A program made the position numbers and the translations under genes. Below are positions 4,511-6,743 of a DNA stretch of 26,816 bases, one piece after another; the stretch's first letter is position 1; each line of letters starts with the position of its first letter. Source of the stretch: Paramoeba atlantica (taxonomy: Eukaryota; Protista; Discosea); assembly GCA_977017575.1 (NCBI GenBank), contig CDRNVI010000205.1, positions 1 through 26,816 on the forward strand, written 5' to 3'. The notes beneath the pieces were generated by a model. That model was not told where the DNA came from, ran no database searches, and was given only the letters and a program-made list of their open reading frames with translations.

Positions 4511-6743
4511 TTAATTGATTCGATTTGTAAATCTTTCGAAAAAATTTGTTAGTTTTTTGCAATGTATAGGGTTAATTGCCAAGTCACCATCAGAATCAGC
4601 AAAACTTTTGAAAATATCGTAACCACCAAACTGCTGATCACAAAAGTGATGCTGAATAAAAATTTGATGAGATTATAGAGGAAACGTAATTTAAGAGAAA
4701 AATAAATAAAAAATTATATATTATATTTGTTGGAAAATCACTGATTTTTTAAAATACAACACCAACACAAAAACAACAAACCATTAAAAAAAAAAAAAAA
4801 ATATTTTTGTGTTGAATCTTTTTTGAAGAGAGAAACTTTTATTTTTGGAGAGAAGAGAGAAAGAAAATAAATAATAATTAAAATTTTGATGCACACAGAA
4901 AAATGAGCAAACCTTTGTATGATCATCTCAAAGCCCTCCTTCACCCCGAAGAATGTTACAACACCAACAAGGCTTTTTCGACCAATGCTGAAACATGAAT
5001 TTACCACCATGACCAAAAAGAAGTGAAGAGCATAACATGTCATGTATCTCTGTGAAGGAGATTGTTCGTTCTTTTCTATCTGAACATATAATTTTTTTCT
5101 ACAAAAAACAAAAAAAACACAAAAATAAAAGAGAGTATTTTATTAAATCTCAAAAAAAAATAAAATGAAAAAAAAATAAATTAATAAATAAAAAAAACTA
5201 AAAAAAGAAAAAAAGTCAAAGTACTGTGTACTGTCACCTGTGTGCAGATTTGTGAAATTAAAAAAAAAAAAAAATGTAAATAAAAAAATCAAACACACAA
5301 TAAAACCTTAATAAAAAACCCAATAAAAAATATATATAAAAAAAAAAAAAAGATTCTATCCTTACAAATCTGGTAAATCATATCATAAATTGGAGATATC
5401 TCCTCACGAAAGTTTTTATAGTCCTCTTTCATTACAAAAACACCCAAACTTAAATTGAGAGCTGCTCTCCAATTTCGAGTTCCCCTTTTCCACCACTCTT
5501 CATCACCATGAATTAATTTTACAATAACTCCATAGTTCCTTCAATCAAAAGAACCCCCATCTACAGAAAAAATCATGTGTAACTTCAAATTTTCAATCCC
5601 AGAATACATCATTCCTCTTGAAAGAACAGCAACACCTTGGTTGTTGTTGTTGTTCAGTTGATCATATTCAACCCAATGAGGGTACTCTTCATTCTCCCAA
5701 GAATTATCAAACATTCTCTTCACTTCAACCTCAACATTACACACTCTCTAACCATTCTTTGTTAGGATGATGGAGTGGAATTTTTTTTGTTTTTGGACCC
5801 AATATTTGAACTGGCTATCTGAATACTGCCAACCAACCCTGGAAATTAGACCTTGAATCTGATACCTAGTAAGATCTAAATCGAGAAACATTCTCCCAAA
5901 AAACATGGACTTTTTCTTTTTTTCCATCTCTCGAAATTTTTTGGTGGCTTGTTGCACATCAGTTGGGAGTTCAAAAAAGTCTTTAATCTGTTGTTTTCAA
6001 TTGCAACTCCCTGTTTTTTCTTCCTCCAACTGGAAGAGTTTCTCTAATACTTGAATAATCTGATCTGTGTTGTGATCACTTAAAAGCTGAGACAACAAGG
6101 AGATTGGATTATCAAAACCAAGTGATTCTACAGCTCCATTCATCCAATTTGTCCACTGGGATTTTTCAAAAAAGTTATGATGGTGAGGAGCAGTGGTTAC
6201 AACAGCAGGACTAGTTGTGTTGGCAAGGGGAGGAGGAGGGACAGTGCTGGTCATGGTGCTGTGACTGGCCTAAAAAAGTGATTTTTTTCAACTTTTTCAA
6301 AGTTTTGTTTTGGAGGAGAATTGTTTTAAAAAAAATAAAACCTGCTGCTGCTGTTGTTGTGATGAAACTTGAGGAAGATGACTCTTCACTGAATCTGACA
6401 CAAAAAGTCAAAAATCAAAATGACTCATCTCCCCCTCAGTTTGATCCCCAAATATCATTTTTCAAACCAAAAGAGAAATCACACACACACACTCTAAAAA
6501 ACATACACTCTGCTGCTGATTTCTTTCCCTCTCTCCAAAAAAAATCGAAAAAAAGAAAACATCCATACTTGGTTGAGCTTGACACCTCTCACATTCATCT
6601 GGACAAACATGTTCTACATACAACTCATGGTGACTTTTAGTTTGCTTCCCACCAAAGGAACCACATTTCTCTAGTTTTTTCTCCCCTTTCCCTTTCAAAC
6701 ACATTTGCTGCAGATGCCCACATTTTATCACTTTGCCTGCCAT
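4511..6743 (-). pseudogene. Five-exon Transib/RAG1-core-like DDE transposase relic, C-terminally truncated, with 6 in-frame stops
   Basis: Manual model: exons 6743-6569, 6394-6342, 6269-5366, 5079-4913, 4651-4511. All introns are GT-AG and phase-compatible (1,0,1,0). Motifs appear in RAG1/Transib order: LDLTRYQIQ, EVKRM, MIFSVDGG (first Asp), SSSQLSLGVFVMKED, RTISFTEIHDML (second Asp), FG...PCWCC (CxxC), AINPIHC (cf. RAG1 IDALHC). The family call rests on recalled motifs, not a search. Confidence 0.6.

Follow-up and report, generated by a model that had tools for sequence, protein, structure and literature searches.

A decayed, intron-containing gene of a multi-copy, CAC-ended mobile element beside subtelomeric repeats in Paramoeba atlantica

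The disrupted coding frame

The DNA analysed in the present study, hereafter the window, is the whole stretch of 26,816 nucleotides formed by positions 1 to 26,816 (forward strand) of contig CDRNVI010000205.1 in the Paramoeba atlantica assembly GCA_977017575.1. On its minus strand, from 7994 down to 4572, lies a 3'-truncated, transition-mutated copy of a mobile element, of which about 3.4 kb are kept, and this multi-copy element, whose terminus begins with CAC, contains a decayed gene with introns. The original prediction described the gene as a Transib/RAG1-core-like transposase. What stands of that description is a decayed, intron-containing gene of a CAC-ended mobile element, with RAG1, Transposase_21 and the Plavaka group among its language-model neighbours; what is not supported is membership of the Transib/RAG1 lineage itself.

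Exon 1 (6269-5366, minus strand) is a single frame of 301 codons interrupted by three stops (TGA at 5999-5997, TAG at 5750-5748 and TGA at 5543-5541), while the remaining two frames of the same stretch are full of stops. It includes a candidate first catalytic aspartate in the string SVDGG, at 5561-5559. Intron 1 (5365-5080) is A/T-rich and runs from GT (5365-5364), within a GTAAG donor that is kept in two close copies of the element (loci L001 and L004), to AG (5081-5080). Exon 2 (5079-4913) holds a candidate second aspartate in the string HDM (5041-5039) and, about 24 residues further on, a C(2)C motif at 4969-4958, read as PCWCC in the window; a fourth stop, TGA, lies at 4930-4928. Both candidate aspartates were picked by eye. 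Intron 2 (4912-4652) again begins with GT (4912-4911) and ends with AG (4653-4652), and is followed by a remnant of exon 3 (4651-4572), 27 codons long, before the element is cut by a subtelomeric block. Read from the sequence, both joins, from exon 1 to exon 2 and from there to 4651 onward, are in phase. The splice model that had been proposed can thus be read in the sequence for exon 1, exon 2 and the start of exon 3, whereas the part of exon 3 beyond 4571 is subtelomeric repeat.

The exons are also visible in public sequencing runs. In three of these, hundreds of contigs with 80-99% likeness stack on 6001-6162, 5353-5595 and 4867-5109, which correspond to the proposed exons, and coverage thins over the introns. 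Insertions and deletions in the paralogue contigs measure 3 and 6 nt and keep the frame, and paralogue contigs match both sides of intron 2 while skipping 4663-4906. One paralogue has CGT in place of the TGT at 4963-4961, giving PCWRC, together with an in-frame insertion of 6 nt. In a paralogue the exon 3 remnant is conservatively altered, with IFESFAEA against IFKSFADS in the window (the contig has its loose end at 4620). The frame 6269-5366 is a genuine former coding frame and not a chance one.

How the frame came to be broken can be followed in the close copies. At the first stop position of exon 1, L001 has CGA (R) and L004 has CAA (Q); at the second, both have TGG (W); at the third, L001 has TGG and L004 a codon for Q. 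Each of these copies in turn carries stops of its own, different from those of the window. Transitions make up 150 of the 166 substitutions between the window and L001, or about 90% over window positions 4991-8002, and the C>T and G>A changes occur in several dinucleotide contexts, beyond CpG. When C or G is chosen at every transition difference among the three close copies, 300 codons are obtained with zero stops. As judged from these substitutions, the four stops (three in exon 1, one in exon 2) are C>T/G>A damage, and the standard code applies. A variant code with TGA and TAG as sense codons was considered and rejected: the standard code gives long retroelement open reading frames (ORFs) in the window, and the stop positions read CGA, TGG or a Q codon in the paralogues. 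With four stops and its 3' part lost, the window copy is unable to make an active enzyme.

As a separate observation on the code, two database proteins from the same ENA assembly read TGA in the DNA as W (P0004, from L003 9998-10345, and P0005, from L005 3538-3765). Some contigs of this assembly have been gene-called with TGA as sense, so that seemingly intact ORFs there can be read-through artefacts.

Copies, terminus and truncation of the element

Four other copies of the element were found. The window element is 92-95% alike to L001 8150-11584, which was located via a word search hitting a paralogous ORF, and to L004 7746-10712, which was located later; it is 70-76% alike to parts of two more loci, L003 and L006. 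All five copies share the same start base (7994 in the window, 8158 in L001, 7749 in L004, 8714 in L003 and 4776 in L006), and their upstream flanks are unrelated. The terminus of the window copy, at 7994-7977, reads CACTTTGGGTCAAAAAAA, and all five termini follow CACTTTG(G/A)(G/A).CAAAAAAA. A CAC-starting terminus, which the original prediction had anticipated, is thus present in all five. That five copies, those diverged to 70-76% among them, start at exactly the same base between unrelated flanks points to transposition and not to segmental duplication.

An intact copy did not come to light, as every copy retrieved is broken on its 3' side: LINEs (long interspersed nuclear elements) interrupt L001 and L003, L004 meets another repeat and the contig end, and an element bearing reverse transcriptase disrupts L006. 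L001 additionally has a SINE (short interspersed nuclear element) inserted in exon 1. In L003, a pogo/Tigger-type element with a DDE_1-like ORF occupies 10400-12486, in intron 1. The pogo ORF was considered as the element's own gene and rejected, being a separate insertion with its own 56-bp terminal inverted repeats (TIRs; 84% complementary). No other candidate transposase gene was found in the 3.4 kb that are kept.

Two further candidates concerned the ends of the element. A 379-bp stretch common to L001 and L003 was examined as a possible 3' end and proved to be the 3' end of a LINE with its poly(A) tail. These LINE 3' ends (L001 12594-12972 and L003 12607-12984, with 88% mutual identity) lie shortly downstream of the two element copies. 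A plus-strand LINE whose constant 3' end would lie at 7994 was likewise discarded, there being no plus-strand ORF and no tail, and the coding frame lying on the minus strand. Upstream of the L004 copy, pieces of a cyclophilin (Pro_isomerase) ORF are found at 2599-4367.

The 3' truncation in the window is sharply defined. A subtelomeric block of about 1.77 kb, outside the element, extends over 2803-4571 between a 176-bp satellite and unique DNA. It is 94-97% alike to L006 11009-12753 and L007 3817-5562, with partial copies besides, and in five other copies it begins at CCTATACATTGC, each time next to a different upstream flank. Including partial tandem copies, the block spans 9936-12753 in L006, where it is likewise followed by the 176-bp satellite, and 1812-5562 in L007, and it recurs at other contig ends. 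No other part of the stretch comes near its abundance in the public runs, where contig depth at 4381-4542 is very high. The window copy of the element is cut at 4571/4570, and only 4651-4572, the 27 codons given above, belongs to it. The final 19 codons and the stop of the exon 3 proposed earlier, coding PIHCKKLTNFFERFTNRIN, lie in the subtelomeric repeat and are in frame by accident.

This junction bears directly on the motif series that had been put forward as RAG1-like. Its last member, INPIHC, is split by the junction, with ..LAIN on one side and PIHC.. on the other; because it spans a repeat junction, it is an artefact and no counterpart of the IDALHC of RAG1. The other strings of the series are present, although the likeness to RAG1 claimed for them was reproduced by no alignment tool. 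What the window copy keeps extends to just past C(2)C; the H(3-4)H pair and the stretch that would hold the catalytic glutamate are lost at the 4571 junction. For the transposon-subtelomere junction itself, the element gives a clean marker.

The contig end as a whole is built of repeats. The window starts with a (CCCTAAA)n telomere at 1-931, and the 176-bp satellite at 1091-2958 lies between this telomere and the subtelomeric block. The transposon remnant sits between the subtelomeric repeats and a copia long terminal repeat, which its 5' end at 7994 directly adjoins, and the remainder of the window is dense in retroelements (copia, LINE, gypsy) with long ORFs in the standard code. A SINE-like repeat of about 420 bp is present three times in the window (8437-8854, 22873-23291 and 26647-26816) and at 10452-10872 of L001; that 20-kb locus has four further copies besides the one in exon 1.

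Between exon 1 and the 5' terminus, a minus-strand ORF (6743-6462) opens with an ATG, and its segment 6743-6555 encodes a Cys/His-rich motif, C..F..KQ.KS.H..L..H.CP.EC.RC. Motif and start are retained in the diverged copy L003 (9295-9492), and the ORF has no Pfam match. The ORF may represent the first exon and encode a DNA-binding finger, in which case it would presumably be spliced to 6269. On the opposite strand, an ORF of 140 aa (6218-6640, plus strand) gave a sub-threshold Pfam match to MRP-S28 (E 3.9e-4, 21.3 bits against a cut-off of 22.3). This ORF is interrupted in L001 and L004, missing from L003 and without PDB support, and the match is probably due to chance.

Affinity of the encoded protein

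Elements of the CMCT clade have 5'-CA..TG-3' termini and target-site duplications (TSDs) of 2-5 bp, and their DDE transposases possess an RNase H-like core whose metal ions are bound by two Asp and one Glu; a zinc module, C(2)C...H(3-4)H, is placed after the second Asp and before the Glu. The order D...PCW(R)C of the decayed gene and the 5' CAC of its element fit this clade. RAG1 belongs to it together with EnSpm/CACTA, Mirage, Chapaev, Transib, Plavaka and further groups, and elements of the clade typically end in CA..TG (PMC12730594).

The only positive evidence on the family comes from the language-model neighbours of two pieces, which do not overlap. For the exon 2 piece (49 aa, with the second D and CxxC), 15 of the 30 nearest named neighbours were Plavaka clusters (PF18759), with scores of 0.94 and 0.93, and Transposase_21 scored 0.90. 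For the first-D piece (110 aa, L004:9935-10264), the neighbours included clusters of RAG1 RNase H/pre-RNase H fragments (0.87, 0.81 and 0.80) and Transposase_21 (0.82). Two independent pieces thus lead to families that are grouped as CMCT, and, together with the CAC terminus, they point to the CMCT clade and not to Transib itself. With moderate confidence, we regard 7994-4572 on the minus strand as a no longer functional copy, truncated at its 3' end, of a multi-copy cut-and-paste transposon, whose gene most likely encoded a CMCT-clade DDE transposase.

Several results weigh against this assignment. All family searches used stop-free pieces of 49-111 residues, hence their power is low and the negatives are weak. 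Within that scope, Pfam hmmscan with more than 15 pieces from the window and the paralogues found no RAG1 or transposase family at E<=10, NCBIfam gave no match, and PDB searches, both by phmmer and with a profile covering 111 positions around the first D, returned no RAG1, Transib or other transposase at E<=10, the best matches (RACK1 and SKI6) being at chance level. The profile comparison with RAG1 core, Transib and EnSpm, which the original prediction had named as a check, thus came out empty. A phmmer search of 1.84 billion representatives with a 72-residue piece retrieved only three fragments from the same assembly, two of which are gene calls reading TGA as W, and propeller-repeat noise. 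AlphaFold, run on a 9-row paralogue alignment, produced no usable fold (pLDDT, the predicted local distance difference test, 37.6). Furthermore, neither the window nor six loci contained an inverted copy of the CACTTTG terminus, and none of H(3-4)H, the catalytic E, a 3' TIR or a TSD was seen in any copy retrieved. The language-model scores, at 0.8-0.94, are leads only, with recognition values below the benchmark of the tool. Finally, between the window and the diverged L003 (72% alike), divergence at the three codon positions is nearly flat (0.29/0.26/0.33); past purifying selection is barely visible, and most of the divergence looks neutral.

Other searches added little. A word search with the N-terminal piece returned the window's own ORF and one paralogue only, and with exon 3 nothing; a metagenome scan gave no match, and an unfiltered language-model search with the related piece P0004 yielded nothing useful.

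Could the gene, then, be something other than a transposase? The silence of profile, sequence and structure searches on any transposase would suit a decayed, lineage-specific gene of another kind, either carried as cargo by a mobile element or belonging to a family that segmental duplication has multiplied within repeat-rich and subtelomeric DNA, and so would the repeat-rich, subtelomeric contexts of the copies and the restriction of relatives to one assembly. Such an origin has some claim to attention and yet we hold it to be unlikely, given that five copies start at exactly the same base between unrelated flanks, the most diverged ones included, that two independent pieces indicate the same transposase clade, and that the kept 3.4 kb offers no alternative transposase gene. 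Still further from the evidence is the notion that A/T-rich repeat DNA merely happens to be open where exons were proposed and that the splice model is an artefact, which strikes us as scarcely credible. It could draw on the near-equal divergence of the three codon positions and on the RNA record, in that none of the listed runs holding the stretch is recorded as RNA and the sole run guessed to be RNA contributed no more than four short contigs, all from a diverged paralogue. Against it stand the 300 codons that are open, once transitions are undone, in DNA of about 30% G+C whose other frames are riddled with stops, the in-frame indels of the paralogues, and a similarity that tracks the exon borders.

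There is also the lineage originally proposed, in which the gene would belong to the Transib superfamily proper, as a decayed and truncated member. Its CAC terminus resembles Transib ends and the heptamers of recombination signal sequences (PMC4411706), fragments of the RAG1 RNase H/pre-RNase H region are among the neighbours of the first-D piece, and D...D...C(2)C occurs in the right order. Nevertheless, neither pieces nor profile match RAG1 or Transib in Pfam or PDB, the piece with the second D and CxxC is nearest to Plavaka and Transposase_21 rather than to RAG1, and the IDALHC-like motif has turned out to be a junction artefact. The kept element also lacks a RAG2-like gene: the kelch neighbour expected with a RAG-type transposon is missing, no ORF of at least 45 aa in 6270-7994 having a Kelch or other relevant Pfam match, and the part downstream is lost. 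We therefore rate strict membership of this lineage as decidedly improbable.

The place of the element among named transposons

With a CMCT-clade DDE transposase as the preferred identity, the intact element would have been a cut-and-paste transposon, mobilised by a DDE enzyme that includes a zinc module. The window copy has lost the 3' part of its gene at the subtelomeric junction and carries four stops made by C>T/G>A transitions.

Its likeness to the CMCT clade lies in the CAC of the 5' end, a second D followed by C(2)C, and the Plavaka, Transposase_21 and RAG1 neighbours. It departs from the members of the clade in having no similarity at the level of hidden Markov models (HMMs) to any that is named, and in possessing two or more introns and perhaps a Cys/His-rich exon upstream. 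With Transib and RAG1 the element also shares a CAC terminus, and its two candidate D residues and C(2)C, in that order, could correspond to D600, D708 and C727/C730 of RAG1, a match that was not derived by a tool. However, its end reads CACTTTG and is not heptamer-like (CACAGTG or CACWATG), and profile and sequence searches give no match. Transib itself has CAC ends like those heptamers, with 5-bp TSDs (PMC4411706). Plavaka and EnSpm (PF18759, PF02992), known from fungi, are the top language-model neighbours of the piece with the second D and CxxC, but hmmscan finds neither family in the element, which comes from a protist rather than a fungus. Plavaka termini, moreover, are TGT..ACA or CATCA..TGATG and not CAC (PMC12730594). 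Within the CMCT clade, nothing singles out Transib or RAG1, and the piece with the strongest signal lies nearest to Plavaka and Transposase_21.

A bolder placement would make the element a deep, unnamed, intron-bearing protist branch of the RAG1/Transib/CACTA clade, to which no relative among 1.8 billion proteins is detectable by HMMs. We consider this rather unlikely, although it deserves mention for what would follow from it. The window copy, dead and without the catalytic end of the enzyme, cannot settle the ancestry of RAG1, and its practical value lies in a correction, namely that a RAG1-like motif was made by a repeat junction, and in the marker that it provides for this junction. Should a new deep branch, neither animal nor fungal, be borne out by a full-length copy, it would widen the sampling available for the origin of the V(D)J recombinase core, and such a copy could serve as an outgroup helping to root the origin of the RAG1/Transib core.
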